This document shows positions 2 to 26,294 of a DNA stretch of 64,000 nucleotides, piece after piece. The DNA lies in assembly GCA_047495785.1 (NCBI GenBank), contig JBLDXI010000054.1, positions 930,001 through 994,000 on the forward strand, in the 5' to 3' direction. The position numbers and the translations under genes were made by a program. The DNA is from Lepidodermella squamata (Eukaryota; Animalia; Gastrotricha). How positions within the stretch are numbered: the stretch's first letter is position 1; each line of letters opens with the position of its first letter. Under the pieces are notes generated by a model. That model did not search any database and was not told where the DNA came from. It saw only the letters and a list, made by a program, of their open reading frames with translations.

Positions 2-1237
2 TACGTAGTGGCTAAAATCGCGAATGACTCAGTCCTAACTTCGAAGGTTATTGGGATTCGTGTTGGGCTAATGGCCTATTCACCTGATGGACAACCTCTT
101 GGGGATATTCAAACTGTAGCTCATTGGACCAATGAGAAAGGCCTCCAAAACATCGCATTCATCCGTCAGGATTCAGATAGGTTCACCTATGAGAGTTTTA
201 GCCTCAAAGCTGTCAGCCGCATAAGGTGGATTACTGGTAACCCTCCGATTGACCACCCTACTTTAGGACGGATTGATAAGCGTCTGCCAGAAGGCGTTTT
301 CCCGGCTGCAATTGTTTTCTGCTGCATTTCAACGCTTCTTCAAATTTTCGGAATGATTGCAGTCCTTATAGGACGGAATTCAAGAATTTCTCAGTTAGCA
401 TGGGCTAAATTCTTTGGATTTTTCGGATGTCTAGTTCTAAATGCTTCTGCTTTGCTATTCGCTGTTGATAGGGGTATTGGAAGTGAGAAGATTGCAATAT
501 TCTCGATTGTTACCTTGTTCATTGGGCTCACAATTGTATTCGCCTTTTTGGCAGCTCGAGTGATTTTGGTTCTCCAATTCGTAAGGTTCTCGAAGCGGAA
601 GAGATCACGCACGACCCTAAAATCTAGCATGACTCTCACAGCCACACACAGGAGCCAAGGGTCATTTGAACGGGGCCGTAGCTTGGAGACTCCTCCTGAA
701 CTGATGACTGATACCATTCAAGTGATTTTAAACTCAGAAACCTGGGCTAGAATGGACAAATCTGCTGTGAACGTCATTTTCGCTCTACTTTTCATCGTTT
801 CCATTGTTCTCACTGGCTGGTTTGCAAGTCAAGACATGGCTTGTCACTCAGACGTTCTAGGCAAACCTGTTTACGATGAAGCACGAGACGTGATCGATGA
901 AACTAGGGTACTAAGTTGTTCCACGTCTAATGCGAGCAGTTTCCTATTGGCATTGGGCAGTCTTCATGTTTTGATCCTATTCATAGCAGCCTACGCTTCA
1001 TATTTATTGACGAAAATTCGAGGGATAGCGAAAGCAATTCCTGACTTGAGTTATTGCCGACTAGGTGTAGCGAATGCTGCTATAATTTATTTGGCAGCGA
1101 TTCTCATATTTCTCATCTTGTCCGACAGCGCTATCGAGCAGCAAATTGCTTTGATATTCTGCGCTATTGCTCTGTCGCTGAGCACTTCTCTAACCTGGAT
1201 CATCCCGATGGTGTCACGCGGAAAAACAGGAAGTTGA
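2..1237 (+). CDS. Class C (GABA-B-like) orphan GPCR, intronless clade; 5' part lies outside the window
   Basis: End of Venus-flytrap domain, stalk WITGNPPIDHP, seven hydrophobic segments, ECL2 C-x24-C and TM7 IEQQIA...TWIIP, all clearly paralogous to the 766-aa ORFs downstream. Confidence 0.85.
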   Translation, partial: YVVAKIANDSVLTSKVIGIRVGLMAYSPDGQPLGDIQTVAHWTNEKGLQNIAFIRQDSDRFTYESFSLKAVSRIRWITGNPPIDHPTLGRIDKRLPEGVFPAAIVFCCISTLLQIFGMIAVLIGRNSRISQLAWAKFFGFFGCLVLNASALLFAVDRGIGSEKIAIFSIVTLFIGLTIVFAFLAARVILVLQFVRFSKRKRSRTTLKSSMTLTATHRSQGSFERGRSLETPPELMTDTIQVILNSETWARMDKSAVNVIFALLFIVSIVLTGWFASQDMACHSDVLGKPVYDEARDVIDETRVLSCSTSNASSFLLALGSLHVLILFIAAYASYLLTKIRGIAKAIPDLSYCRLGVANAAIIYLAAILIFLILSDSAIEQQIALIFCAIALSLSTSLTWIIPMVSRGKTGS

Positions 1238-1597
1238 ACAGACAGCAGACATAGTTTATGCTACATGACATAGTTTGCTAAAAACTTCCGTTGAAGCTTT
1301 CGTGCAACGTCTTTACTTCATTTCATGACTTTTGAACATTTTTTGATAGATTTTTAATTCTTAAAACAGAAATTTTGATAACCAACTTACTCATTGAGTT
1401 ACTCATTAGGTTGTTCCAAAATCAGATATAGGATCCTCTGCGAACAAATTAATCTCGCACAATGCTTTGACAATACAAAATACAAAATAAAAGGAATCCC
1501 AATACTTTTTTCTATGAAAATAGGCTTCGTTCATAGATCGCGAAAAGTTGTGAGCAGCAACTCTACGATATGTGACCAGTGACCAGTCATCTATCTA

Positions 1598-1795
1598 CCG
1601 TATTACCGCGCTTTGAGTGTCATGCCACTATAAAGTGAAACATGATTTTTGACCCCTTTTGAATTTCCTCGATTATAGTGGCACCTAATGTTTTGCATTA
1701 AAATTCAATCTGGCATGTCACTATAAACGGGGCATAGTGACATGCCACTGTAAAACGAGCTATAGTGGCATGACACTCAAAGCGCGGTAATACGG
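1598..1795. mobile_element. Tc1/mariner-pogo-type MITE, 198 bp
   Basis: Perfect 35-bp terminal inverted repeats (CCGTATTACCGCGCTTTGAGTGTCATGCCACTATA) flanked by TA at 1596-1597 and 1796-1797; internal copies of the ATAGTGGCA motif. Confidence 0.9.
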
Positions 1796-2160
1796 TAAAT
1801 CAGAAAAAACTCGAAAGAGGCTGAGTCTGTTTTGAGGGCATGGAAAATGACGCGTATAGTGATCCCCGACAGTTCTCGAGAAGCTCCGTGGACTAATTGG
1901 TTAATGTCTATTTGAAACATTTCACTAGAAAAAATGTATAGATTCTATTGATAAAATCGGAATAATTGTACTGAACTCAAGAACTAATTTTGGCACTCGA
2001 TTCATCTCTGCAGATACGTACACCGTGAACAACAAGTTAATTAATACGTACATGCAAGTACTCGCCTCGAAAGATGAGCGCCCGATATCACAGACAAACC
2101 CACGTATGTCAACTCTCGTGACATTCGTTACTTTCAAGACAAATCGTTAGCATGAGCAAG

Positions 2161-2190
2161 CCAATTTAGGTTATAAGAAGTTAGAAATAC
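2161..2190 (+). promoter_or_regulatory. Candidate core promoter (CCAAT + TATAA) of the class C gene at 2230
   Basis: CCAATTTAGGTTATAAGAAGTTAGAAATA is identical upstream of the paralog (about 12066-12094). Upstream similarity spans about 1837-2229 vs 11715-12135. Confidence 0.45.
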
Positions 2191-2229
2191 CCTTTCCACA
2201 TTCCTTGAGAAGAATAATTTAGCAAGAAA

Positions 2230-4530
2230 ATGTCCTTAACGGTCACATCCTTATGTACACTAGCATTAGCAGCAACCTTCCATGGTGAAGGCCAAGCTGC
2301 GATATCGAAACCAAAAACACTCCAAGTGCTTCGATTGATGCCGATGGCTGATATTGATCCTAGCCAGGTTGCAGCTATGCGATTCGGCTCCCAACTTGCC
2401 GCGGACCAGGTCAACGCAAGGCGAGATATTTTACCAGACTATCATATCGAAGTGGTTTTCAGTGATGAATCTCTCGGCCTGCAAGCCCCGAAAAGGCTGG
2501 TCGAGTTCCGCAGACAGGCGGAGTTGAATTCGAGCGTAATCCAATCTCCCATAATTGTCGGTCCCGATTTCTCTTCAGGCTGCAAATCAGTTGGAATGGT
2601 TTTGCCGCACGTGAAAACAATAGGTCTATCAGCGTTTTGCTCCGCCCCTTTCTTTGCCGATCGCCCATTTAGGAATTTGTACATATCTCTGACGACGGGA
2701 AAGACAGTAGCCATTTCTATGCTCCGATTCATTAAGGAAGTTGGGAAATGGAACAGATTTGCTATTCTCACAACTGCATTGAACCCATCCGACTACGGCG
2801 TGACGTTTTTCTTACAAGAGCAAGCCATGGCAACAGACTCTTTGGTTCCTTGGTTCGATATGGTAACCGATATAAACCCACAATTAGTCGCTTCTCTAAA
2901 GATGAGTGGTTTGAGAATAATCGCCCTGGCCCTTGGCAATTCAATAATGGCGGCTAAATTTCTATGCGAAGCTTATAAACAAGGTTTGACAGGACAACGT
3001 TATATATTCTTCAACTTACTCATTGGCTATTCTTCATACCAAGCCGCGGGATGTACCCAAGAACAGCTCGCTAGTCAGTGGAGGCAAACCATTCTTTTTG
3101 GTAACACAAATCGGCCAGGTAACTACAGTGTGGCATCAGATTTAGGAACAACAGCCGGGGATTTTGAAAATGCCGTTCTTCGTGAAATGAATGCAACATC
3201 AATGGATTCTTACCTTCTTGCCTACAACTCGTATGACACTTTTATGAGAGCAGCTTTCATCCTTCATAACACAGAAGTAAGGTTGAAATCTGAGTTTAAT
3301 TCGACTTTGGCCGAATACAGGTTTAGCCCGGATTTTGTAGTTCGAGTAGCAAATGAAAGTCTTCTATCGACTAAAGTCACCGGAGTAAGGGTCGGTATGC
3401 TTTCCGTCTCATCAGCAGGTCAGATCCAGGGTGATATCCAAGCAATTGCTCAGTGGAACCCCGAGAAAGGAGTTGAAAATGTAGCACTGCTGAAGCGAGT
3501 TTCAGGTGAGGATAAAGATGAGTTTTCCTACGATAGTTATGATATAACCATCCTTCGATCTATTTACTGGCCAGCCGGCCATCCTCCAAGGGACCAGCCA
3601 ATTTTGGCGAGAGTTGAAAAGCAGCTCCCAAATGAAGTCTTCGTTTCTGCTGTAGTGATCAGCTCCATTCTTCTGCTATTTCACATTCTCGGAATTATTT
3701 TGGTATTATGGAAACGGAAAAATTCATGGTGCCCGTTAAGTAGGAGCATAGGATTATTAGGCTGCGTGATACTCGACGCATCAGGAATATTGTTTTCCTT
3801 GGATCGGGAACTTGATAGTCACTTAATACTTGTTTCTTCGATAGTGACTTTGACCGTTGGAGCTTCACTCTGTTTCGGGGTAGTTTCTTTCCGGATGTCA
3901 GTTATTACTCGCACGATTCCTTTGCCTTCAAAACGGGCGAGCCCAAATCGGCCTCGTTTAGATACTGCAGGAAGTGTGTATCGGAATAGACTGAACACCG
4001 AATCTTCAAATTCAATTCAATTCATGTTCACTGATGAAAGCAAAGCGTCGATCGATAAATCTGTTGCTAAACTAACAGTTTTACTCGCACTTTTGAGTTC
4101 AGTAATTTTACTCGGCTGGTTTACCACGCAGGAAACGATCTGTACCACTTCCCATCTTGGCCAGCCTGTTTATTCCGAAACCACTGATACGATTGTTGAA
4201 ACGTCAGCTGTCAAGTGCTTCACGGCCAATATGATAGGTTTCACGTCGGCCCTGTGTTGCCTGAACATGGTATTCCTGTTGATTGGAGGTTTTTATTCGT
4301 TTCGGTTAAATCAGATGAAAAGGGTTCCTCATGAAGCAATAGATTTCATCCCGGCCGTTTTCGGTCTGGCTAATTGTGGGGCGATTTTCGTTGTTGGAAT
4401 TTTGATCTCTCTTATTTTATCGACCCACTTGATCGAACAGCAAGTAGCTATTGTGTTGTTAACTCTTGCACTTTCGTTGTCATCTTCTACCACTTGGTTG
4501 TGGCCCATGGTCACCGACTTTCAGAAATAG
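2230..4530 (+). CDS. Class C (GABA-B-like) orphan GPCR, intronless, 766 aa
   Basis: Signal peptide; ANF-receptor/Venus-flytrap motifs (VNARRDILPDYHIE, IVGPDFSSGC, KWNRFAI, RII, LCEAYKQGLTG); GABA-B-like stalk WPAGHPPRD; 7TM; very short C-tail. Confidence 0.9.
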   Translation: MSLTVTSLCTLALAATFHGEGQAAISKPKTLQVLRLMPMADIDPSQVAAMRFGSQLAADQVNARRDILPDYHIEVVFSDESLGLQAPKRLVEFRRQAELNSSVIQSPIIVGPDFSSGCKSVGMVLPHVKTIGLSAFCSAPFFADRPFRNLYISLTTGKTVAISMLRFIKEVGKWNRFAILTTALNPSDYGVTFFLQEQAMATDSLVPWFDMVTDINPQLVASLKMSGLRIIALALGNSIMAAKFLCEAYKQGLTGQRYIFFNLLIGYSSYQAAGCTQEQLASQWRQTILFGNTNRPGNYSVASDLGTTAGDFENAVLREMNATSMDSYLLAYNSYDTFMRAAFILHNTEVRLKSEFNSTLAEYRFSPDFVVRVANESLLSTKVTGVRVGMLSVSSAGQIQGDIQAIAQWNPEKGVENVALLKRVSGEDKDEFSYDSYDITILRSIYWPAGHPPRDQPILARVEKQLPNEVFVSAVVISSILLLFHILGIILVLWKRKNSWCPLSRSIGLLGCVILDASGILFSLDRELDSHLILVSSIVTLTVGASLCFGVVSFRMSVITRTIPLPSKRASPNRPRLDTAGSVYRNRLNTESSNSIQFMFTDESKASIDKSVAKLTVLLALLSSVILLGWFTTQETICTTSHLGQPVYSETTDTIVETSAVKCFTANMIGFTSALCCLNMVFLLIGGFYSFRLNQMKRVPHEAIDFIPAVFGLANCGAIFVVGILISLILSTHLIEQQVAIVLLTLALSLSSSTTWLWPMVTDFQK

Positions 4531-4831
4531 CGAGATCCTCCAACCTGAACATCAAATCACAGCACTTCATCAATAAACATTTTTTAATTTGATTCTCCAC
4601 ATTAATTATAAAGCATCGACGTTTCGATATACACGTTTTTTATTTTGCATTTCTATAATGAAATTACGATAGTGAATTAAGTGAATCTATTAAAAAGTTG
4701 AACAATGCATACATTTAAAAGTCTTTTCCCAAATTGATTCAATTGAAACAGCATGTAGAATACTCTACAGAATCAAATTTAATGAAGAGTCCGTTACTTT
4801 CAGCCTGACATCGATTCTTTCTGTATCCTCC

Positions 4832-5266
4832 TTAGCAGGCATCCTCCTTAGTGTCGATTTTATCCTTCGCCATCTTCTCATTAAATCGATGTCTAGCGAA
4901 CCAACACTTTACTCTTTTCGGGTCGAGGTCCACCTTGACGGCAATCTCCATAATTTCAGCATTAGTCGGGCGAGGGTTCTCCTGGAGGGCCTCTTTCAAT
5001 GCAGCAAACGGCCGTGTTTTCGCTTTGATGCTTTCCTGTTGCGCTTTCTTCTGAGCAATCCGCAATGAAGAGGTTGGTCGGTGAGCCGTGATCCAATCCT
5101 TAACTCGTGATGGCGACGATTTAACGGCCTCGGCGATAGCAAGTAAGCGTTTTGCATAAAGCCGTTCCGGTTTCATAGCTTCTGTTTTCATAATGTCGAT
5201 CTGCCACGGGTAAAACCTTGAGCGTTTCTCCAACTTGGCGAAAGGACTGTTTCGCGACATTTCAAC
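4832..5266 (-). CDS. Exon encoding two divergent homeodomains (last exon of the multi-homeobox gene, or exon 2 of a separate gene starting at ATG 7996)
   Basis: Acceptor TTCTTTCAG ending at 5267; homeodomain-like RSRFYPWQIDIM...RVKDWITAHR and LKEALQENPRP...RVKCWFARHR; phase-0 compatible with donors at 8297 and 7993. Confidence 0.65.
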   Translation of the reverse strand, partial: VEMSRNSPFAKLEKRSRFYPWQIDIMKTEAMKPERLYAKRLLAIAEAVKSSPSRVKDWITAHRPTSSLRIAQKKAQQESIKAKTRPFAALKEALQENPRPTNAEIMEIAVKVDLDPKRVKCWFARHRFNEKMAKDKIDTKEDAC

Positions 5267-5299
5267 CTGAAAGAAGAACATTTTGAAAAGATTAACCAC

Positions 5300-7962
5300 G
5301 AGTTCTCGGTGTTCACTTGGACCCTAAACTGACGTGGAGAGTTCATGTGGACAAGGTCTCTGACCGTTGCCGCAGAAATCTGGGTTTTTTCAAACATCTC
5401 ATGTTCACCCCTGGTCTGTCGCGCCGCTGGCGCCGCACCCTTTACTTGACTCTGGTCCGTTCGTGCTGGTCTTATGGGACCATTTGTCAGGCTACCGCCT
5501 CGAAGCAACAGCTTAATCGTCTCGCAGTCATCCAAAATGATAGCCTGCGTGCAATGCTCCACATTCGTCGGGACACCAGGGTCCGCGTGTCGGAGTTGGA
5601 ATCTCGTTGCCGCATCCCGAGTGTCCCTCGGTTTCTGGAACAGTGCCAGCGCCGTTATGTTGCCAAAGCCGCTCAGTTTGTCCTGCCGCTGCGCCAGGGC
5701 CCCGAGAGCGTCCGCCTGATGGCCCGCCCCCCTCCGCGCTCGCCCTTCGTGCTGTTGAGCAACAGACTTCCTCGTGGTCCTCTGCCCGACTTCATTGGCT
5801 AGGCTGTTATTCTCTTTTCTCCCATCTTCTCTCCTAAATCTTCCCTCTTCTTTTCTTCACCTCTTCTTTCATGTTGTTTTTTTTTCCTCTACAGGCTGCC
5901 TTGCTTTTTTATAAAATTCCTCCGTTAGCTACCGTTGTCTCCGCCATATTATCTCCTTTTTACTCTTACCGCAATTCTCTGTAATGTGTTTTTCTCTGCT
6001 ATCGATAACTACCCTGCAACTGATAAAACCCTCGCCATCTCCCTCTCCGTCTCTTACGTGCCCATCAATATGATGAGCATGGATACATCTTACTAGCACG
6101 CGCCTCTTGTTCCATAGTATTATTAGAGAGTTATTTTGTGTATTTTGTTACAGTGCTCCCTCGATAAAAGCACTGGGTCGGGAGCCAGACGCGGTCTTTA
6201 AACAAGGGAAAGCTATAACGAGGGCTGTAATTGAATGCAGGAGCTAAAAATAGACCGTTTCTAAGTCTTAAGACAGTTGCCATAGCAAAGCGCTAAAAGA
6301 GACGGACACAGATTATGTGTAATTGCAAAATTTGCTCGCTGAAGGCTGTTAAACAATAACGCGATGAGTCATAAATTCGTCGACAATTGTTCTTTCCTTA
6401 GTTAAGGCGTGATTTGACTGGTTAGCCATTGTTTTAACTCTGATTTTCAGTCCTGCCTGGGATTAACGAACTCACTATAAAAACAGAAGCTGGAATCGCA
6501 TATGTACTTCAATTAGCCAGCTAGTCTGATTAAAATCGCAAAAACATTCATTCAAAATCACAGCTTAAACAATTAATCACCTTGGTCAAGATTGACCAGA
6601 ATACTTCTGAATAAATCACCAGCAAATTCAGCCTAACCTTCTCAAGACAATGCAGCGTTCAATTCAGAACTCATGCTTCGCCTAAAATTCGTAGAATTAT
6701 TTAAAAAAAAATACTAATTAATATGAAATTTGAAAAAATTATGATGAAATATGTATTTTCGATAATTTTTTCGCGGTTAACCTGACTTTTTCTTTTTTAA
6801 ATTCATGGCATTGAGCAATCACGGACCAATTTCAAGGCATAAGACGTGCGTTTCCGTCAAGAGGGTACGATTCGATAGGTGTTTAGTTTGAATGGAATAA
6901 ATTTGTATCTTCTCAGGCGTGATCTGATTTGCATTCGACTGGCCTATTAGGATCAGAGCAAGGTACAAAATCGGGCAGAAGCTCCCGCCGCCCCTCCTCG
7001 GGATGTTGCGATTTTCAAAGTCAAAATCGAATGATTAACAGTTGTGAAAAAAACCCGGAAAATTGCCAGGGCGTTGAGCAATGAAATTGTAGAGTAGTGG
7101 CAGCCAGTTTCGTGGTAGATCAGGCCTATAGACTATCGAAAATCGGCTAATAATTCCGATAACTTAGGACAACTGGAACGAATGAAAACGATCTAATTTT
7201 ATGAGAATAAATCCACGTATCGGAATTAAAATAAATCTTAAAACAAGGACGTGATTCTTCATGATTACGCAACACAGCCGGGAACAAAATAGGGGAAAAC
7301 TTTCTTAAAAAACACGATTTGATCATGCTAATAATGCCGGTAAATTTCAAGAGATTTTCTGGCCGGGAAAAAGCTAAAAAATGAAAAATAAGGGCAATCC
7401 AGATGAGTCTTTTAGTTGATCAGCAATTGACCTGAGGAAAAATCTGCAAATCAAGAAGATAGAAGATTGACGGGCATTCTTATAGTTGGTGAAATGAATT
7501 GCTGATTTTGTCTGATAAACTGGCGTAATTTCTGATGGAAAAGTTTAACGAAAAAGCAAGACGACTCGCAGCACGACTTGAGTGGCAGCTAATCCACGCA
7601 CTCTGTTGCATAATCACATTCATTTCAAAGCCACAAGAACAGCTTAATGCACTGCTTATCTTTCAACTCGTTTGAACTAACCTTGAAATAACTGGATCTC
7701 TCAAAACCACGACACCGCGCCGCTGTTAGGTTTCCAGGAACGCTTTATTATTTTAATTTTTCACGCTTAATTCTTTTAATTTATCGAATAATTATTAAAA
7801 ATTCAGTAATAAATTTTAATTAAAAATTTACAAATAATTTATTTAGCAGGGTCCAAAATTACGGTCTATAAACGAGGGAGTTCTTTTAAGGAGGGTGCCA
7901 CTAACGAGGGAGCACTGTATTTGGAAAGAGGACAACAATAAAGATTTTTATGTTATGTTATG
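5300..7962 (+). mobile_element. 5'-truncated non-LTR retrotransposon (LINE, C-terminal part of RT ORF) with a nested DNA transposon
   Basis: FLGVHLDPKLTWRVHVDKV...RTLYLTLVRSCWSYG...LAVIQNDSLR (typical post-RT LINE ORF2 motifs, 5303-5802); pyrimidine-rich 3'UTR; AATAAA at about 7937 then a (TTATG)3 tail; 8-bp TSD TTAACCAC at 5292-5299 and 7963-7970. Confidence 0.85.
6151..7917. mobile_element. Non-autonomous Tc1/mariner-pogo-type DNA transposon nested in the LINE 3'UTR
   Basis: Ends CAGTGCTCCCTCG...CGAGGGAGCACTG flanked by TA; removing it rejoins the LINE 3'UTR. A right-end-like copy also lies at about 6191-6228, so the element may be composite. Confidence 0.7.
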
Positions 7963-8225
7963 TTAACCACTCGATATAAGTGGTCGTATTTACCATGTAC
8001 TGTAAACACTCGTTCTTAAGGCTAGTCTTATGATTGAGCTTTAGTAGTACGAGCTTTTACGACAGAGAGATTTCACGGCCTCCGTTTCATGTAGCTCTCT
8101 GCAAGCTTTTTTGATACTGTTATCTGATTTACAGTTGAGCTCTCAATAATGGGGACAATGTTCCCTAAAAATTTGCGCCCCCAATTTAGCAGATTAATTT
8201 ATGAATGTTGTGAAATCCCCCCTTG

Positions 8226-9862
8226 TTAAAAGAACAGGTCTGGCTCTGGAACACGTGCTTTTATCAAAGGAGTAAAAACATTTCTCCTAAGACAAACCTC
8301 CATGGAATCCATGTTTTCTCTCATGAGAATTTTAGCAGCTCGACGTTTTCGATAGAACCAGGTTACTATATGCTGCTTAGGACATCCAATCAGCTTAGCC
8401 AGTTCATCTTTCCGACCTTTACTCGGGGAAATGTTAACTGAAAATTCCTGAATAACAGCAAAGCTCGCTTGAATAAATAATCTACTAAATCCACTCAAAT
8501 GACTTACTTTCTCCAGGATCTCGCGATGGCTGCATTTTTCATTATGAAGGGGTGAACACCTAGAACGATGTGAGTTGAACCACTCACGGACCTTAGTCGG
8601 TGTTAAACCAGTCAAATCGGCAAGTCTCCTAATTTCCATGGGTTTCGGTGACATATCACTAGCGAATGACGACGTCAATGCTTCAAGTTGTGTGGGCGAT
8701 AACCTGATCATGTTCCTCTCCTTTCCAGTTTTATAGATACGATTGTAAAACCACCTTCGCACTCGGTTCGGGGTAGTCTTCAGTGCTTCGGCAATTTCTA
8801 GAAGTCGCTTCGGATGGAGTTGCAGCGGATTAGCGAACTCCTTTCGAAGAATTTCCAGCTGCCAACTCTCAAAATATTGTATGCTATTCGAAGGAGCCGA
8901 ATCGCGGTCGTTCAGTTGTCGAATCTTAAACAAAGATGATAAGACGATGTCGGAATTTAGCCTTTACATAGATGGCTTGAGGAGTATATATTTCAAAACA
9001 ACAGATTGAAATTGCAAATTCCCCTTATCCCTTACTCGGTTTTAAACGTAGCACAAATATTACGAGCAAAAACTATTAGTTACATATCCGCTATTCGAAC
9101 CCCATCCAAGTACGAATAGACGGAAAAGTGTAAAGTGTACTACGTATTTCGAATGTAGCGATCCGAAAAGCAATAACGGATTCAAGACTATATATGGAAG
9201 CTGAAAATTACTTTTTCATGGAGAGCTGCGTCTTTCAGCAGTTTAACTTCTCGCGCGGAGCGTTTTCGCTTGAACCAACCAGCTATGATAGACCTTGAAC
9301 AGCCAATCAATTCAGCGAGCTGGGATATCCGTTCAGGAGTTGGTGAGATATTCCCCTCGAACTCCTTGAATTTAATGCTACCAATTAGACTAAAAATTAG
9401 AATAATTTCTAAAAATACCTTATTGAGTAGCGCAATATGTTCCTCAGAGAACTTGAACCACCTCGGTTTCAAGGAAGCTGAATCGAGGCATTTGTCCTTC
9501 TTACGGCGACCTTGCATCCAGTTTTGCACTCGAAATGCTGGGATTCCAACTTCCCGCGATAATCGTTCGATCTCTTCACCTTTAGGATAGGCATTTCTTA
9601 GGTATGAGTCGTTCAAAATGCCACATTGCGCCGTTGAAAGAACTCTCTGTGGCGTCAATTTGAGTTCTGCGATATCCGCGTATTTGTGGTTTTGAATCCA
9701 TGAGTAGACGCGAGCTGGCGTTTCACTGATTCTCTCTGCCGCTGATTCAGCAATCGATCTGGTCAAGGGACAATTCTTCGTGCCATCACGCCTTAGTTTC
9801 CACCACTTCTCAAGGTAATTGCACAAGATCTGGATCTGATGGGGTTCGAAACCTTTCGTCAT
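8226..9862 (-). CDS. Divergent multi-homeobox protein, six homeodomains (exons 9862-9419, 9364-9212, 8924-8508, 8447-8226; about 411 aa), possibly extended to the 5266-4832 exon via a donor at 8297
   Basis: Six helix-turn-helix repeats ending RVYSWIQNHK, RVQNWMQGRR, IIAGWFKRKR, RVRRWFYNRI, KVREWFNSHR, HIVTWFYRKR. GT-AG phase-0 introns at 9365-9418, 8925-9211 and 8448-8507; the first and third sit at the same codon of homeodomains 3 and 6. Confidence 0.7.
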
Positions 9863-10054
9863 TAATTTGATACTTATATGAACAGCCTATTGGGAAAGAA
9901 TTACGATTGATCAACGGAAGAGGCTGTATTCATCCTTTTCTGTCAATCGATACGTGAGGAATCTTTTGGAGCGGATTTGAAGCGCTGTCGCTAGATCTAG
10001 TCTGTTGTAAACTTTCCCAAAATCCTCGTTAAATTGGGATTAAATTTAAGAAAT

Positions 10055-10157
10055 CAGTGACGAAAATGCTTCTTCAAAAAACGGTAAAACCTCGAAAATA
10101 GCATTTTTCAAAAATGAACTTGTTCACCAAAAATCACAAGAAGCATTTTCGTCACCG
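10055..10157. repeat. Short inverted-repeat element (MITE-like)
   Basis: CAGTGACGAAAATGCTTCTT and its reverse complement (19/20 match) about 100 bp apart; no clear TSD. Confidence 0.5.
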
Positions 10158-10184
10158 CAAGCGGCCGGAAAAACCGAGTTTGCG

Positions 10185-10913
10185 GAGCTACTTCAAAGAT
10201 CGACCTCGGAAATAGCAAGCAAGCGTTTTGCATGAAGCTGTTCGGGTTTCATAGCTACTGCTACTGCTACTGGTACAGGTCAAACCTGGAGCCTTTTAGA
10301 CCTCAGCGAAACAGCTGTTGCTCAGCGTACCAGCCTTAAGCCTTATGAAAAGCAGAATTGAGAAATTATTAGTTTATAGATTGAAACTTTACCTCAATGA
10401 AATCCATATTATCGTTCATCGAAATATCAGCAGCTTGACGTCTCCTTTTGAACCACCCGATACCCGATTAGAAGAGACCCCGGACAATCAACTGTTCCGA
10501 TGTTCAGTCGGATGTATATTAACTGAAAGTTTTGGAAAACAAGATTTCAATTATTGAGTAGAGAGTAGAGCGATGTCTCCCTCAGAGATCATTAACCATT
10601 AAGCATTAGGCTCAATTTTTAGGTATGAATCTGCATGTTTGCATCTCTTCCGCCGAGAGCACAGCCAGGTTTTAACTGGAGATGTGGTAATTCCAACTTC
10701 CCACGGTAATCGTTCGATCTCTTCAGCTTTAGGATGGGCGTTTCTTGGGTATGAGTTTTTCAAAGAGTTTTCCGCAGTTGCCAATTTCATCTCAGCCAAT
10801 TTCTTTCTCGAAAATCGCGAGCAGCGAGCAGCAATGGCAGCAATGGAAGAGATATTGGGGATAAACTTAAGACAATTGACAAATATTTCCGAAAACTGGG
10901 AATACCCGGCCAA
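10185..10913 (-). pseudogene. Decayed copy of the multi-homeobox gene
   Basis: In order: NSYPRNAHPKAEEIERLPWEVGI (like HD2), FSVNIHP...GWFKRRRQAADISMNDNMDFIE then GT intron (like HD6 end), then NSCFAEV*KGSRF...AMKPEQLHAKRLLAISE (like the 5266 exon). Contains stops, frameshifts and a (CAGTAG)3 expansion. Confidence 0.7.
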
Positions 10914-12135
10914 AATATTGACGTTTCTACTTCATATATATATATATATTCTCATAGTCCAAATTAGTCAAATCAATTACACTTGTCACTTGCACTATAA
11001 ATGCGCACCCTGCCTCCGAGTATAGCAATCAGGCTATCAGGCTAAATTCAAATATTTAGTGTTCATTGACATCATATAAAAAAGGGGAGACGAAATAAGT
11101 TTAAGATATCAATGACGCGGGGTCGCAAGATTACATCCGCTTGCCGCAGCACCAGCAGAAACACAAATACGTGTAAAAACCTCAGAAAATTTAATATTCA
11201 ATCGCAGATATTTCAGGCAATCTCTTTCTTCCTGCTGCACTCCTTCTGTTTTCTGTTCTGACTTCAAAGGGAGTGCGCGAATGACGTGCGACGATTGCGC
11301 GAACGACGGTTGTCATAGGCTGAATAGTTGAACTGAGGTACCCTGCAAGACGTAAGAATGGATGTTGCCTCGTGACAAATTCTACGAAATCACGGAATGA
11401 CGTGTACATAAATAACTTAAATAACCTTAATTTAAATTGCTTGGACACGTTCTATAATGCCAGAGATGAACATCGGACATTTAAATAAAAACTTTGATGA
11501 GTTTTGATATTGAAAGACGCGCACGGGAAGTAAAGTCAGGTCTCCGTTGCATAAGTCATGAGTCTCTTTCAAATAGTCTTGAGAAGCCTAGTCTTGAATA
11601 GCAGCCAACTTTCCCCCATTTTTCGAGGTATCATTTTTTTGTTGTATAAAAGCCCGGGTTAGTATTTCGGTAACAACGGTATTTCATCTTTGGGAATTTT
11701 TTTGATGCTAGGCAGGCGTGGAAGAATGTTGTGGATGTCGATCACCGACAGATCCCAAGTTGCTCCGTGAAATAATTGGGTCAGACACATTTGACACGTT
11801 CAACATTGCAGAATCTATTGAAAGCATCAATAGCGAGGCATTTCACAATTATTAGAAGTACTGTACTAAAGAAATCATTTTGGCACGCTTTTTCGAGCTA
11901 AAAGTTATATTTTGGAACACCATGAACAACAAGTTAATTAATACGATCATGCACTAACCTCGAAAGATGAGTGCCAGTGATGAGAGAGATCCGCATGCCA
12001 AACCCACGTAATGCCAACTATCGTGCTATTCGTTACTTTCAAGTCACATTCTTAACATGAGAAAGCCAATTTAGGTTATAAGAAGTTAGAAATATCCTTT
12101 CCCGCAGTCATCGAGAGGAATAATTTTGCAACAAA

Positions 12136-14436
12136 ATGTGGTTATTCGCCACAGCTTTACACATTTTAGCATTAGCAGCAGCTTCCAATGTGGAAGGCCA
12201 AACCGCGATTTGGAAACCAAAAACAATCCAAGTGCTTCGATTGATGCCGATGGCTGATATTGATCCTAACCAGGTTGCAGCGATGCGATTCGGCTCCCAA
12301 CTTGCCGCGGACCAGGTCAACGCAAGGCGAGATATTTTACCAGACTATCATATCGAAGTGGTTTTCAGTGATGAATCTCTCGGCCTGCAAGCCCCGAAAA
12401 GGCTGGTCGAGTTCCGCAGACAGGCGGAGTTGAATTCGAGCGTAATCCAATCTCCCATAATTGTCGGTCCCGATTTCTCTTCAGGCTGCAAATCAGTTGG
12501 AATGGTTTTGCCGCACGTGAAAACAATAGGTCTATCAGCGTTTTGCTCCGCCCCTTTCTTTGCCGATCGCCCATTTAGGAATTTGTACATATCTCTGACG
12601 ACGGGAAAGACAGTAGCCATTTCTATGCTCCGATTCATTAAGGAAGTTGGGAAATGGAACAGATTTGCTATTCTCACAACTGCATTGAACCCATCCGACT
12701 ACGGCGTGACGTTTTTCTTACAAGAGCAAGCCATGGCAACAGACTCTTTGGTTCCTTGGTTCGATATGGTAACCGATATAAACCCACAATTAGTCGCTTC
12801 TCTAAAGATGAGTGGTTTGAGAATAATCGCCCTGGCCCTTGGCAATTCAATAATGGCGGCTAAATTTCTATGCGAAGCTTATAAACAAGGTTTGACCGGA
12901 CCACGTTACATATTCTTCAACTTCCTAATCGGTTTCTCATCGTTTCAACCTTCTGGGTGTACCCCAGAACAGCTCGCTGTTCAGTGGAGGCAAACAATTC
13001 TTTTTGGTAACACAAATCGGCCAGGTAACTACAGTGCGGCATCAGATTTAGGAACAACAGCCGGGGATTTGGAAAAAGCTGTCCTTCGGGAAATGAATGC
13101 AACATCAATGGATTCCTACCTTCTTTGCTATAACTCATATGACACTTTTATGAGAGCAGCTTTCATCCTTCATAACACAGAAATCAGGTTGAAATCCGAG
13201 TTCAATTCGAGTTTGGCTGAATACAGATTTGACCCTGATGTTGTAAGTCGAGTCACTAATGACAGTCTTCTCTCGACCAAAGTAACAGGAGTAAGGGTCG
13301 GGTTGCTTTCCGTTTCTTCAACAGGCCAAATCCAGGGCGATATCCAAGCCATTGCTCAGTGGAGCCCCGAAAAAGGAGTTGAAAATGTAGCACTGTTGAA
13401 GCGAGTTTCAGGTGAGGATAAAGATGAGTTTTCCTACGATAGTTATGATATAACCATCCTGCGAACTATTTACTGGCCATCCGGCAATGCTCCAATGGAC
13501 CAGCCAATTTTGGTGCGAGTTGAAAAGCGACTCCCAAATGGAGTCTTCATTACTGCTGTAGTGATCAGCTCAATTCTTCTGTTATTCCAATTTCTCGGAA
13601 TTATTTTGGTATTATGGAAACGGAAAAATACATGGTGCCCGTTGAGTAGAAGCTTGGGATTGATGGGTTGCCTGATACTCGACGCATCAGGAATACTATT
13701 TTCCATGGATCGAAAGCTTGATAGTCAAACGATGCTTGTTTCTTCGATAGTGACTTTGGCCGTTGGAGCTTCGCTCTGCTTCGGGGTAGTTTCTTTCCGG
13801 ATTTCAGTTATTACTCGCACGATTCCTCTGTCTTCGAAAAGGATGACACCAAATCGGCCTCTTTCACAATCTGCAAGTGGTACGAATCGAAAAAGGTTGA
13901 ATGCCGAAGTTTCCATTTCACTTCAATTCATGTTCACCGATGAAAAGAAAAGGTTGATTGACAAATCTGTTGCTGGACTAACGATTGTTCTCGCGCTTTT
14001 GAGTTCGCTAATTTTACTCGGTTGGTTTGTCACCCAGGAAACGACATGTACGACGTCACATCTTGGCCAGCCTGTTTATTCCGAATTCACGGATTCAATT
14101 GTTGAAACATCAGCTGTCAAGTGCTTCACGACAGATATAATTGGTTTCACGTCGGCCCTGTGTTGCCTGAACATTGTATTCCTGTTAGTAGGTGCTTGTT
14201 ACACATTTCGATTGAATCAGATGAAACGAGTTTCGCATGAAAGCGTTGATTTTATTCCGGCTGTTCTCGGTCTGGCAAATTGTGGGGCAATTTTCGTTGT
14301 TGGAATTTTGATCAGTCTTATTTTATCGACTCACTTGATCGAACAGCAAGTAGCTATCGTCTTTTTAATTCTTGCACTTTCCTTTTCATCTTCAACTACT
14401 TGGTTGTGGCCCCTGATCACTGATTTCCGGAAATAG
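12136..14436 (+). CDS. Class C (GABA-B-like) orphan GPCR, intronless, 766 aa; close paralog of 2230-4530
   Basis: Same length and motifs as the 2230 gene, including a 614-bp identical tract. Confidence 0.9.
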   Translation: MWLFATALHILALAAASNVEGQTAIWKPKTIQVLRLMPMADIDPNQVAAMRFGSQLAADQVNARRDILPDYHIEVVFSDESLGLQAPKRLVEFRRQAELNSSVIQSPIIVGPDFSSGCKSVGMVLPHVKTIGLSAFCSAPFFADRPFRNLYISLTTGKTVAISMLRFIKEVGKWNRFAILTTALNPSDYGVTFFLQEQAMATDSLVPWFDMVTDINPQLVASLKMSGLRIIALALGNSIMAAKFLCEAYKQGLTGPRYIFFNFLIGFSSFQPSGCTPEQLAVQWRQTILFGNTNRPGNYSAASDLGTTAGDLEKAVLREMNATSMDSYLLCYNSYDTFMRAAFILHNTEIRLKSEFNSSLAEYRFDPDVVSRVTNDSLLSTKVTGVRVGLLSVSSTGQIQGDIQAIAQWSPEKGVENVALLKRVSGEDKDEFSYDSYDITILRTIYWPSGNAPMDQPILVRVEKRLPNGVFITAVVISSILLLFQFLGIILVLWKRKNTWCPLSRSLGLMGCLILDASGILFSMDRKLDSQTMLVSSIVTLAVGASLCFGVVSFRISVITRTIPLSSKRMTPNRPLSQSASGTNRKRLNAEVSISLQFMFTDEKKRLIDKSVAGLTIVLALLSSLILLGWFVTQETTCTTSHLGQPVYSEFTDSIVETSAVKCFTTDIIGFTSALCCLNIVFLLVGACYTFRLNQMKRVSHESVDFIPAVLGLANCGAIFVVGILISLILSTHLIEQQVAIVFLILALSFSSSTTWLWPLITDFRK

Positions 14437-14832
14437 CAGAAAAAGCTCCCGCCTGAACCTCATTATTAAATGCATTTCAATATCATTTTCAACATGAATT
14501 AGCGGCTCCAAATAAACATCCTTTAGGAGAATTCGCGTACAGGCCGACCGGGGCAGAATTCGAACTCGGCCCAAAACATTATTATTTATAATGATAACAT
14601 AATCATTTACTCAATTACAATCTTTTTTGACAGCCGGAAACTGCGATAAAAAATGATCGATGTCCATGAGAACGCACATTCATGAGAAACAGGAAATGAT
14701 TCAGTATGTTTTCTGTACTCGAATGCAAGCCGAAATTGCTCCGTGAGCTTTTCTCAACTTACACACTTTCAGAGAAATCAGACGTGGACACCCTGGAGGA
14801 GGAGGTGGACTCAGATGCATTTTAATGTTTAT

Positions 14833-17701: not shown

Positions 17702-18896
17702 TCAAAAAACGACGACGTTCACGCGCCTACGAGCAAAATTTACCAGCAACTTTTTTCGTCCTATTTCAAATCTATCGATAAATGCCTCTATATCAGCCGG
17801 CCTGATACACTGCAGCACTGAACTGAGTAAAGCGCCAATTACTATGAAGAGAACGGCTGCCTTTCTGAACCAAGCGGGCTCTGTCCGCCACGCACCCAGT
17901 GACCACATACTAACCTGCAAATTCGTGACGAATCCTGGAATGTAACTGATGACAAAGAGTATGAACAACGCGACCGACATTTTGACGAGATAGATCTCTT
18001 TACGCTGCCACTCGGCCAGGCGGTCCCCTGATTTAAACGTTGATCGTGCTGAAACTCCACTTCGAGTTGACTTCAAATGGTCAATGGTTTTGAAAATCTT
18101 CCAATAATTGACCACCAAATAAACTGTTGCGCATGAGAAAAGAGATAAGTAGTATACGATGGGTAGGAAAGATGTGTCGAAATCGCCATATAAGCTGTGG
18201 TCGAAATTTCCACAAATCAGAACAGGCTGAGTTTGGTTGAACTCCTGCATTATGACCCACTTCGCAGCATACGAGTTCCATGGCCACCAAGCGAAGACAG
18301 CAGTGAGCAGCATTGACAAGCACAGCATAAGAAATGTTGCGCCACCAATCTTGGAATAATTTTAATTAAACCTTTAAAAATATGATCCTATACTTGCATA
18401 CCTTGAAACTGCTCGGTTTATAGTTGACTTTGTTTGACGAGATACATAGGCGCCTTTCGTACGAAATCGAAGCTTCGATAAGTAAACCGAACCCACCAAC
18501 GGCGTAAAAGAGCCACACTGAGGCCGTACAGGCTAGAGGCGATGCCTCCCACCAGCCAGTTCTTAGAGTGGCATATAGACCGAAACAATGCGTCCAGGCA
18601 AAGATGGCATCTCGAATGTGTAAGCAGCAGGTAAGAATGAGGAAATCGATTTTCACCCTTCGATGGACATACACGGCGATATTTAGAACTGACGCGATGA
18701 TCGACAGGGTGGCGAAAAGGGTACAAGCTACGACCCAACCCAATCGGTCTTCCATGGTTGTTGCCGTGACGTCGTGGTAAAAGCCAACGTAATAAGGCTT
18801 TGATCGGCCGTAGTCTCGATCCGGAAAATCAACATCGATCCAACCACTGTTGAGAACTCGAGCGATAGGGTGCGTTGAATTATTCAGATTTGCCAT
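17702..18896 (-). CDS. Class A (rhodopsin-like) orphan 7TM receptor, exons 18896-18402 and 18349-17702, about 380 aa
   Basis: TM2 LHIRD, ECL1 GWW, TM3 Cys and SISYERRLC, ECL2 ICG, TM6 KEIYLVKM...FVISYIP; 52-nt phase-0 GT-AG intron 18350-18401. Confidence 0.85.
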
Positions 18897-25078: not shown

Positions 25079-26294
25079 TCAAAAACGGCGAGGTTTCACA
25101 CGTCCTCGAAACAAATTGATGGAAAGCCTTTTCCGGCCTTTGTTAAGCCTATGAAAAAATGACTCGATATGAGCTGGTGTGATACATTGCAACACAGAAC
25201 TGATCAATGCGCCAATGACTATGAAGAGAACTGCCAATTTCCTAACCCAAGCAAGCTCTGCCCGCCACGCACCCAGTGACCACATGCTCACCAGCAACGT
25301 TGAGATGAATCCTGGAATGTAACTGATGACAAAGAGTATGAATAACCCCAATGACATTTTGACGAGATATATCTCTTTACGCTGCCATTCGGCCAAGCGA
25401 GCCGCAGATTTAAAGGCGGAGTAAAGCGATGTAGGTTTTGCATCTACTACAAAACCACCTCTAGTCCTTTTTAAATTATCAATGGTTTTAAAAATATTCC
25501 AATAATTGATTGCCAAATAAACTGATGTGCATGTGAAAAGAGAGGCGTAGTACAAGACGCCTAAGAAAGTCGTGTCGAAATCGCCATAGAAGCTGTAGTC
25601 GAAATGACCGCAAATTAAAACGGGCCGATCAGTGTTATAGCCTTCCAGTATGACCCACTTCGCAGCGAAAGTGTTCCACGGCCACCAAGCGATGAAAACA
25701 CTTAGCAGCATTGACAAGCACAGCGTAAAGAAAGTTCCACCAAAAATCTTGGATAAACAAACATACCTTTATTAAATATTGACGAAATTATTAAAATACC
25801 TTGAATCTGCTCGGTTTGTAGTTGATCCTGTTTGATGAGATGCACAGGCGTCTTTCGTACGAAATTGAAGCTTCAATGAATAAACCGAACCCGCCAGTGG
25901 TCCAAAAGAGCCACAAAGAGGCCGTGCAGGCTAAAGGCGATGCCTCCCACCAACCTGTTCTGAGGGTAATAAAGAGCCCATAGCAATACGAGCAGGCGAA
26001 GACGGCATCTCGAATGTGCAAGCAGCAGGTAAGAATGAGGAAATCGACTTTCAACCTTCGTTGGACGTAAACGATGACATTTACGATTGAAGCGATGATC
26101 GAAAGGGTGGTGAAAAGGGTACAAGCTACAACCCAACCTAATCGGTCTTCCACGGTTGTTGAAGTGACATCGTGGTAAAACGCAACGTAATAAGGCTTCG
26201 AGCGGCCGTAGCCTCGATCTGGTAGGTCAACATCGATCCAACCACCGTTGACAACTCGAGCGATAGGGTACGTTGAATTAGTCAGATTGGTCAT
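25079..26294 (-). CDS. Class A orphan 7TM receptor, exons 26294-25800 and 25747-25079, about 387 aa
   Basis: Family motifs as above; 52-nt phase-0 GT-AG intron 25748-25799. Confidence 0.87.

Follow-up and report, generated by a model that had tools for sequence, protein, structure and literature searches.

A predicted gastrotrich gene encoding eight tightly packed homeodomains that probably grew by duplication of a three-domain block

Proteins with many homeodomains are rare. Vertebrate ZHX1-3 and Homez, which belong to the ZF class, carry 3-5 homeodomains together with N-terminal C2H2 zinc fingers (ZHX) or a leucine zipper (Homez), and some ZHX homeodomains mediate dimerisation and partner binding. 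The mammalian PRD-class protein DUX4 has two homeodomains, each bearing Asn51, and an activation domain at its C-terminus. This asparagine reads the TAAT core, and its loss normally cripples base-specific homeodomain binding. In Caenorhabditis elegans, CEH-100, CEH-83 and CEH-99 contain 12, 5 and 4 homeodomains, respectively (Hench et al. 2015, PMC4448998). These domains are tightly packed and divergent, some being shortened to about 55 residues, and the genes are lineage-specific, with orthologues missing even in close relatives and an origin by intragenic and local duplication (PMC4448998). For gastrotrichs, the homeobox search in a genome paper was limited to Hox genes (PMC11660948).

Here, we analyzed a locus within a 64,000-nt stretch of the Lepidodermella squamata genome (hereafter the window; contig JBLDXI010000054.1, positions 930,001 to 994,000). 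Three minus-strand ORFs are present (9188-9862, 8226-8933 and 4832-5299), which were joined into a predicted gene of five exons running from 9862 to 4832, with all introns in phase 0 and bounded by GT..AG (Table 1). The joined CDS of 1599 nt is stop-free and specifies a 62 kDa product of 532 aa with a pI of 9.9, in agreement with the length of up to about 532 aa given in the original prediction. This product is made up of eight tightly packed homeodomain units (HD1 to HD8) and little else. The reading we favor from the sequence, with a probability of roughly 0.6, is that of one five-exon, minus-strand protein-coding gene with the arrangement (ABC)(ABC)(AB), grown by duplication of a block together with its introns.

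Table 1. Features of the predicted gene and its surroundings. Positions are those of the window unless given in amino acids (aa); a slash marks a splice junction.
Feature	Position	Strand	Details
Candidate 3' splice acceptor (ttctttcccaatag/G)	9887..9900	(-)	Sequence reading; 24 nt 5' of ATG, in frame with ATG
Exon 1	9419..9862	(-)	ATG at 9862; HD1, HD2 and helix 1 of HD3
HD1 in exon 1	aa 1-62		A-type, Asn51, 10-aa insertion
HD2 in exon 1	aa 63-125		B-type, Gly51
Intron 1	9365..9418	(-)	54 nt, GT..AG, phase 0, in frame, stop-free
Exon 2	9212..9364	(-)	Remainder of HD3 (C-type, Arg51), linker to ...ALHEK
Intron 2	8925..9211	(-)	287 nt, GT..AG, phase 0
Exon 3	8508..8924	(-)	HD4 (A-type, Asn51), HD5 (B-type, Ser51), helix 1 of HD6
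Intron 3	8448..8507	(-)	60 nt, GT..AG, phase 0; codon position as intron 1
Exon 4	8298..8447	(-)	Remainder of HD6 (C-type, Arg51), linker to ...DSME
Intron 4	5267..8297	(-)	3031 nt, GT..AG, phase 0, high-copy repeats throughout
Exon 5	4832..5266	(-)	HD7 (A-type, Ala51), HD8 (B-type, Arg51), tail, stop TAA 4832-4834
Decayed partial gene copy	10201..10764	(-)	tblastn, blastn, junction alignment; directly upstream of gene
High-copy repeat	9874..10271		Depth 730-1040, opposite-strand joint; between decayed copy and ATG

The homeodomain nature of the units was assessed with profiles and structure models. All three ORFs scored above the gathering cut-off (22.9 bits) of the Pfam Homeodomain family PF00046, with 60.1 (9188-9862), 80.4 (8226-8933) and 42.5 bits (4832-5299). 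Scored singly, four of the eight units exceeded this value (HD2, 41.5; HD4, 32.2; HD5, 40.7; HD8, 34.5 bits), while HD7 reached 12.5 bits and HD1 gave no match; HD3 and HD6, each scored with its intron retained, reached 21.5 and 18.0 bits. With a profile built from outside proteins only, every unit scored (17.7-60 bits), including HD1 (17.7), HD2 (57.1), HD7 (24.8) and HD8 (43.7). On the same profile, HD3 gave 49.6 bits in one alignment when spliced vs. 39.4 bits in two pieces when unspliced, and HD6 gave 48.4 vs. 37.8 bits; splicing thus gained about 10 bits for each and produced one continuous alignment.

In line with these scores, AlphaFold modelled two three-helix bundles both for HD1+HD2 (pLDDT 84.1) and for HD7+HD8 (pLDDT 86.6), and Foldseek matched the two models to homeodomains with rmsd values of 0.5-0.9 A. 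The best matches were the DUX4 double homeodomain for HD1+HD2, and tandem engrailed and DUX4 for HD7+HD8; DUX4 also came first in a sequence search against solved structures (6e-15). The HMM scan and structure prediction proposed with the original prediction hence both spoke for homeodomains, in all eight units by profile and in HD1-2 and HD7-8 by modelled fold. The long insertion reported for HD1 is also present: it spans 10 residues and is modelled by AlphaFold as a longer helix 1. A mini-intron at this place was rejected, as no in-frame GT..AG of workable length was found and the insertion is placed within helix 1.

Regarding the splice model, the joins proposed between the ORFs at 9212/8924 (ALHEK/IRQL) and 8298/5266 (DSME/VEMS) proved exact, in frame, in phase 0 and of the GT-AG type. 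Reading through intron 2 leads to a stop after 10 codons, and ORF2 offers no ATG ahead of its well-conserved HD4, whose translation thus requires splicing of exon 3 to exon 2. Intron 1 cuts HD3 between homeodomain positions 18 and 19, and the intron codon claimed to be common to HD3 and HD6 was indeed found at that point in both (LNK/EFEGNISP and LEK/EFSVNISP). Further, the exon 4/5 junction occupies the same module position as the exon 2/3 junction. The 5' end of the gene is unsure because of the acceptor-like site that precedes the ATG, which could, judging from its sequence, be a spliced-leader acceptor or the relic of an older upstream exon. Exon 5 carries an ATG of its own (5260), 6 nt past its acceptor.

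The repeat structure was examined with a tree of the units, which fell into the classes A (HD1/4/7; 86/89), B (HD2/5/8; 80/87) and C (HD3/6; 84/85); the observed within-class score was reached by only 2 of 560 label arrangements. In-register matches between modules (E = 8e-14 and 3e-13) were far beyond chance, and the motif FxxWQ...KRLLxIAEAxK was present in both HD4 and HD7, as had been noted. Of the pattern (ABC)(ABC)(A+D) described earlier, the duplicated three-domain module was retained, but the last unit, HD8, is of the B type and not a new D, which gives (ABC)(ABC)(AB). The tail of exon 5 aligns with the beginning of a C unit. The modules share only about 30% identity, which marks them as old. 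The gene would have grown by tandem duplication of a block of three homeodomains together with its introns.

Directly upstream, the partial copy contains stops and frameshifts and consists, in order, of an HD2-like segment, the 5' half of an HD3-like unit, the 3' half of an HD6-like unit, a 51-nt GT..AG intron and an HD7-like start. Its blastn identity was 82.5% to 9515-9617, 78% to 9425-9460, 73-74% to 8410-8446 and 8296-8360, and 86.7% to 5125-5184, and its B unit still scored 27 bits on PF00046. An origin as a retrocopy was ruled out by the retained intron remnants. A second copy of the gene has decayed at this place; the locus holds one intact gene and one remnant, not an array. As read from its sequence, this copy, which was absent from the original prediction, is the best evidence for the exon 4/5 join. 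The intron homologous to intron 4 measures 51 nt in it, so the 3-kb last intron of the intact gene was once short and was later filled with high-copy repeats.

In a genomic DNA run, unitig depth ranged from 250 to 10,500 in intron 4, compared with about 45 in the exons, and the unitigs across the locus included no spliced form and had repeat-derived joints only. The high copy number makes the intron 4 repeats probably young. At 3 kb, this intron is disproportionately long next to the other three (54, 60 and 287 nt). The high-copy repeat at 9874-10271 holds a perfect 18-nt inverted repeat (10057-10074 / 10138-10155). A plus-strand ORF in intron 4 (5317-5802) looked like a non-LTR reverse transcriptase tail, an identity that Pfam did not support.

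The repeat-filled intron may have broken the gene. It is possible, though unlikely, that two transcription units exist, namely a six-homeodomain gene made of exons 1-4, ending by read-through of intron 4 (...DSME, 24 codons and a stop), and a separate or orphaned exon 5. The latter would be either a two-homeodomain gene starting at ATG 5260, possibly spliced-leader trans-spliced at 5267/5266, or a remnant severed by repeat insertions. The disparity between the 3031 nt of high-copy repeats and the 54-287 nt of the other introns would fit such a split, as would the position of the exon 5 ATG just behind an acceptor, which resembles that of the exon 1 ATG, 24 nt past the candidate acceptor. However, the frames agree across the 8298/5266 join, the exon 4/5 junction has its homologue in that of exons 2/3, which is obligatory, the decayed copy has both parts 51 nt apart with GT..AG borders, and exon 5 is still fully open with a good predicted fold, all of which favors a single five-exon gene.

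The locus as a whole could also be silent or dying, having been inactivated recently within a birth-and-death family, with its frame still undecayed. In favor of this, the adjoining copy is already dead and repeats lie both in the last intron and directly 5' of the ATG. Nevertheless, this explanation seems improbable in view of 532 stop-free codons, four intact GT..AG pairs, modules old enough to be only about 30% identical, and fold-determining residues retained in all eight units. The intact 532 codons next to a stop-riddled copy rather argue for selection on the intact copy.

We then considered the residues that contact DNA. Trp48 is conserved in all units, Phe49 in five (Ile or Met in the others), Arg53 in six and Asn51 in two, and helix 3 is strongly basic with many Lys and Arg. 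As predicted, Asn51 is confined to HD1 and HD4, with G, R, S, R, A and R at position 51 of HD2, HD3, HD5, HD6, HD7 and HD8; the view that most units may be non-canonical was likewise upheld as to Asn51, which six of eight are without. Positions 47, 50, 51 and 54 vary between units. The retention of Trp48 (8/8) and Arg53 (6/8) and the Lys/Arg-rich helix 3 fit continued contact with the DNA backbone, and from the sequence we infer that the protein would be nuclear and bind DNA as a chain of homeodomains. Given the restriction of Asn51 to HD1 and HD4 and the variation at 47, 50, 51 and 54, two canonical reading heads are expected, which would be HD1 and HD4. The other six units might bind with weak or changed base specificity or with none, or act as spacers or in protein contacts.

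By analogy with some ZHX homeodomains, the protein could instead be mainly a protein-protein or RNA-binding scaffold and not a sequence-specific DNA binder. Consistent with this, six of the eight units lack Asn51, several are without the usual residues at 47, 50 and 54, and weak similarities to Homez and ZHX were found. We consider this role doubtful, since Trp48 in every unit, Arg53 in six, the basic helix 3 and the pI of 9.9 fit nucleic-acid binding, and two units are canonical at Asn51.

Similarity to the described systems was of a general kind. ZHX proteins and Homez share with this product the presence of several divergent homeodomains per protein, and ZHX homeodomains were among the sequence matches; however, no long linkers separate the packed units here, similarity was no better than to generic homeodomains, and the Pfam match to Homez was weak (E 0.052, 13.8 bits, under the cut-off of 21). 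Neither zinc fingers nor a leucine zipper were detected by Pfam in any of the three ORFs. DUX4 was the best sequence and fold match for two adjacent units, but at 15-22% identity, a match explained by generic homeodomain similarity counted twice. By their published description, CEH-100, CEH-99 and CEH-83 resemble the product in having many packed divergent homeodomains, in being lineage-specific and in being born by duplication. They differ in that what is repeated here is a block of three domains whose C unit carries a conserved intron, and as the phylum is not that of C. elegans, an independent origin is almost certain.

A search for orthologues among 1.8 billion proteins returned none, with a best identity of <=26%, in keeping with the earlier description of the factor as fast-evolving, and a word-index protein search with ORF2 gave no match. 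The nearest proteins (P0004, P0005, P0006 and P0008) are encoded in a tandem array (locus L002) of the environmental ENA assembly ERZ26273096. They resemble the product in length (515-595 aa), number of homeodomain units (8-9), pI (9.2-9.8) and the retention of Trp48 and Arg53 with Asn51 in only 0-1 units. Their genes are arranged head to tail. In contrast to the gene here, they are intronless, identity is only 21-26%, and their source is another organism (GC 36.5% vs. 42.5% here, no DNA similarity). As unit comparison revealed no unit-to-unit collinearity, no orthology is claimed; the likeness may reflect either common descent or convergence. The claim of a novel factor holds only in a qualified form, as similar proteins (eight-homeodomain, basic, Asn51-poor) occur in another organism and a 12-homeodomain gene, ceh-100, has been described (PMC4448998). 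The predicted gene is of a real kind, for which precedents exist.

The gene would belong to a lineage-specific poly-homeodomain expansion; alone, it adds one more member and not a new principle. The locus offers a small, clean case in which three domains were duplicated as a block along with their introns and a dead sister copy puts a date on the enlargement of an intron by repeats, and its eight units form a natural series of helix-3 variants that bears on how Asn51-less homeodomain chains meet DNA. If expressed, the poly-homeodomain genes of this animal would amount to a large group of candidate regulators in Gastrotricha that has gone unstudied. It is a long shot that such genes, including this one and the environmental-assembly look-alikes, read DNA together in a modular way, much as polydactyl zinc-finger arrays do. 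Chains without Asn51 and variable at 47, 50, 51 and 54 would then read long composite sites, and duplication of blocks and death of genes would keep renewing the repertoire, perhaps in answer to the abundant genomic repeats.

Finally, the surroundings of the gene were inspected. Scanning the window for Rfam families and tRNAs yielded nothing. Regulation of the flanking receptors by the gene, raised earlier as speculation from position, was unsupported: the receptor duplication (2020-4554 vs. 11917-14462, 88%) leaves the homeobox gene out. For ten other ORFs in the window, the sole Pfam matches were two weak ones to 7tm_1, and a word-index protein search with a flanking receptor gave one weak, unnamed match.

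The minus strand carries three open reading frames, from 9862 down to 4832, which score 60.1, 80.4 and 42.5 bits on the Pfam Homeodomain profile (cut-off, 22.9 bits). The splice sites of the original prediction were located exactly, all being GT..AG and phase 0, and the joined coding sequence of 1599 nt yields a predicted protein of 532 aa, the upper length it had proposed (62 kDa, pI 9.9, 104 Lys+Arg vs. 65 Asp+Glu). A single eight-homeodomain gene (units HD1-HD8), the upper end of the six to eight predicted from the sequence, is the reading we favor, with a probability of about 0.6.

Predicted homeobox gene, its units, the decayed upstream copy and the receptor ORFs (window positions)
Feature	Position	Strand	Details
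Exon 1	9862-9419	-	predicted
Intron 1		-	54 nt
Exon 2	9364-9212	-	predicted
Intron 2		-	287 nt
Exon 3	8924-8508	-	predicted
Intron 3		-	60 nt
Exon 4	8447-8298	-	predicted
Intron 4		-	3031 nt
Exon 5	5266-4832	-	predicted
HD1 alone			no Pfam match
HD2 alone			41.5 bits (Pfam)
HD3 alone			21.5 bits, intron retained in scored sequence
HD4 alone			32.2 bits
HD5 alone			40.7 bits
HD6 alone			18.0 bits, intron retained in scored sequence
HD7 alone			12.5 bits
HD8 alone			34.5 bits
Decayed copy	10201-10764	-	four parts
Part 1			HD2-like piece, DNA 82.5% identical to 9515-9617
Part 2			5' half of HD3-like unit, DNA 78%
Part 3			3' half of HD6-like unit and tail, DNA 73-74%
Part 4			start of HD7-like exon, DNA 86.7% identical to 5125-5184
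High-copy element	9874-10271		inverted repeat arms 10057-10074/10138-10155
Receptor ORF 1	8-1237		cut by window start
Receptor ORF 2	2230-4530
Receptor ORF 3	12136-14436
Receptor ORF 4	28249-30507
Receptor ORF 5	34115-36412
Receptor ORF 6	37838-40198	-
Receptor ORF 7	43367-45670

Eight Trp48 anchors, spaced 54-79 residues apart, mark the units. Against a profile of exclusively outside origin (344 homeodomain units, themselves selected with a profile of the gene's own units), all eight matched at 17.7 (HD1, in two pieces flanking its insertion) to 60 bits. On this profile, the spliced forms reach 49.6 bits (HD3) and 48.4 bits (HD6), up from 39.4 and 37.8 bits unspliced, and each aligns in one uninterrupted stretch; this supports introns 1 and 3, the two short ones, being real. 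AlphaFold modelling, which covered exon 1 (HD1+HD2, pLDDT 84.1) and exon 5 (HD7+HD8, pLDDT 86.6), returned two three-helix bundles in each case; Foldseek matches to these models comprised the double homeodomain of DUX4, tandem engrailed and numerous single homeodomains (rmsd 0.5-0.9 Å).

Strong in-register matches link modules 1 and 2 (E 8e-14) and modules 2 and 3 (E 3e-13), and three-way alignment of the modules revealed a repeated three-domain block. A tree of the eight units, with long branches and none starred, groups HD1/4/7 (class A, 86/89), HD2/5/8 (class B, 80/87) and HD3/6 (class C, 84/85), and the observed within-class score was reached by only 2 out of 560 label arrangements. This places HD8 in class B and makes the pattern (ABC)(ABC)(AB); the duplicated module described initially holds, but its terminal (A+D) has to be replaced. 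The C-terminal tail (…NEKMAKDKIDTKED) aligns to the start of a C unit.

HD4 is well preserved and has Asn51, and the frame holding exons 3 and 4 (ORF2) offers no ATG ahead of it, so that splicing of exon 2 to exon 3 is obligatory. In position, the exon 4/5 junction is the homologue of this obligatory junction in the module alignment, which argues against a six-domain gene with exon 5 (ORF3) separate or orphaned. We regard that alternative as rather unlikely, despite intron 4 being far out of scale with the other introns and exon 5 having an ATG 6 nt past its acceptor. It is also opposed by a decayed copy, absent from the original prediction, to which a tblastn search of the window with the model (further matches at 10200-10800, upstream of the live gene) and DNA comparison led. 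This copy contains stops and frameshifts, although Pfam still recognises its B unit at 27 bits, and it reads as a whole-gene copy that lost both ends and HD4-HD5, the latter perhaps by recombination between its two C units. Its HD6-like tail is followed by a 51-nt GT..AG interval and then by a stretch homologous to the exon 5 start. Exons 4 and 5 thus lay ~50 nt apart at the time of copying, and the interval provides the best available support for the ORF3-ORF2 join of the eight-homeodomain gene. That the locus is silent appears improbable.

Intron 4 of the live gene consists of repeats, with unitig depth, taken from a genomic DNA run, of 250 to 10,500 vs. about 45 in exons. The patchwork spans 5297-8082 and peaks at about 10,500 in bin 6093-6291; in one contig of single-copy depth, 6139 and 7916 are connected through 12 other nucleotides, and the 1776 nt separating them here are missing, which could represent an insertion-free allele or a further repeat copy. 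Summed depth is also raised in the HD2-HD3 region (185-220 vs. about 45 at 9277-9674), partly because the decayed copy cross-matches there (9579 C>G 'variant'); the remainder may reflect further close copies of that part elsewhere in the genome.

The 5' region has a good candidate acceptor (ttctttcccaatag/G, AG at 9888-9887), placed 24 nt before the ATG, in frame with it and directly preceded by an in-frame TAG. This site may serve spliced-leader addition, or may be what remains of the junction still used by modules 2 and 3. The stretch separating it from the decayed copy is occupied by a high-copy element whose 18-nt inverted repeat is perfect; this element, directly upstream of the ATG, has a unitig depth of 730-1040 vs. 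about 45 and looks MITE-like.

All units retain Trp48, and six of eight retain Arg53. Asn51, as originally stated, is confined to HD1 and HD4; the other six carry Gly, Arg, Ser, Arg, Ala and Arg, and positions 47, 50 and 54 vary from unit to unit. The protein would be a nuclear, highly basic homeodomain chain along DNA, in which HD1 and HD4 could recognise TAAT-like cores via Asn51. Since base-reading positions are new while backbone-contacting and fold-determining residues are kept, the remaining six may bind with altered, weak or absent base specificity, or act as spacers or as contacts for partners, like some ZHX homeodomains.

Multi-homeodomain proteins are rare but known: the initial observation is confirmed, its interpretation as a novel factor only in part. 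C. elegans has the lineage-specific ceh-100 (12 tightly packed homeodomains), ceh-99 (4) and ceh-83 (5) (PMC4448998), and the few multi-homeobox classes comprise Hdx, Compass, Zfhx, Zhx/Homez, Mux and Dux (PMC6118893). A gastrotrich genome paper looked among homeobox genes for Hox genes only and leaves poly-homeodomain genes unmentioned (PMC11660948). What the present analysis adds is the logic of the modules, the decayed sister and the history of intron 4.

A three-module profile scored against 1.84 billion proteins gave 2625 matches, with 7-14 matched stretches in the top ones. None exceeded 26% identity to the model in BLASTP, so public protein data hold no orthologue. Among the best were two proteins (P0004, P0005) of ENA assembly ERZ26273096, and P0006 and P0008 are further ENA proteins of this type; the matches also included Timema stick-insect proteins and fused predictions across mammalian homeobox gene arrays (Dux-, Mix-, ZHX-like names). 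The four ENA proteins have 8-9 units, with Asn51 in 0-1 of them, a pI of 9.2-9.8, and Trp48 and Arg53 retained. In that assembly, intronless genes of about 515 aa are arrayed head to tail, and the organism is another one (GC 36.5% vs. 42.5%). Neither DNA similarity between that locus and the window nor unit-to-unit collinearity with the live gene was found. These are proteins of the same kind, compatible with common descent or convergence. The eukaryotic array (L002:8001-16479) comprises four genes for basic proteins of about 505-517 aa, one split into pieces, with 8 units counted in P0004, and adjoins the housekeeping genes Mog1 and ribosomal protein L13.

Seven paralogous ORFs of about 766 aa occur in the window, and the live gene sits between two of them; the proteins of these two neighbours are 87% identical. 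The corresponding DNA duplication (2020-4554 vs. 11917-14462, 88%) ends short of the homeobox gene, and the role in receptor regulation speculated on earlier finds no tie beyond position. The duplication is recent, spanning just one receptor gene and about 200 nt upstream; by sequence identity it looks similar in age to the decayed homeobox copy (82-87%). The seven ORFs (about 750-786 aa, apparently intronless, pairwise identity 28-87%) combine an ANF_receptor ligand-binding domain with a hydrophobic C-terminal half, and a word-index protein search with receptor ORF 2 (2230-4530) returned a single weak outside match (23% identity). Two ORFs of about 210 aa, 17702-18328 and 25079-25717 (-), match rhodopsin-type 7tm_1 weakly (E 2e-4 and 2e-3) and probably represent another family of receptors, interspersed among the ANF-type genes.
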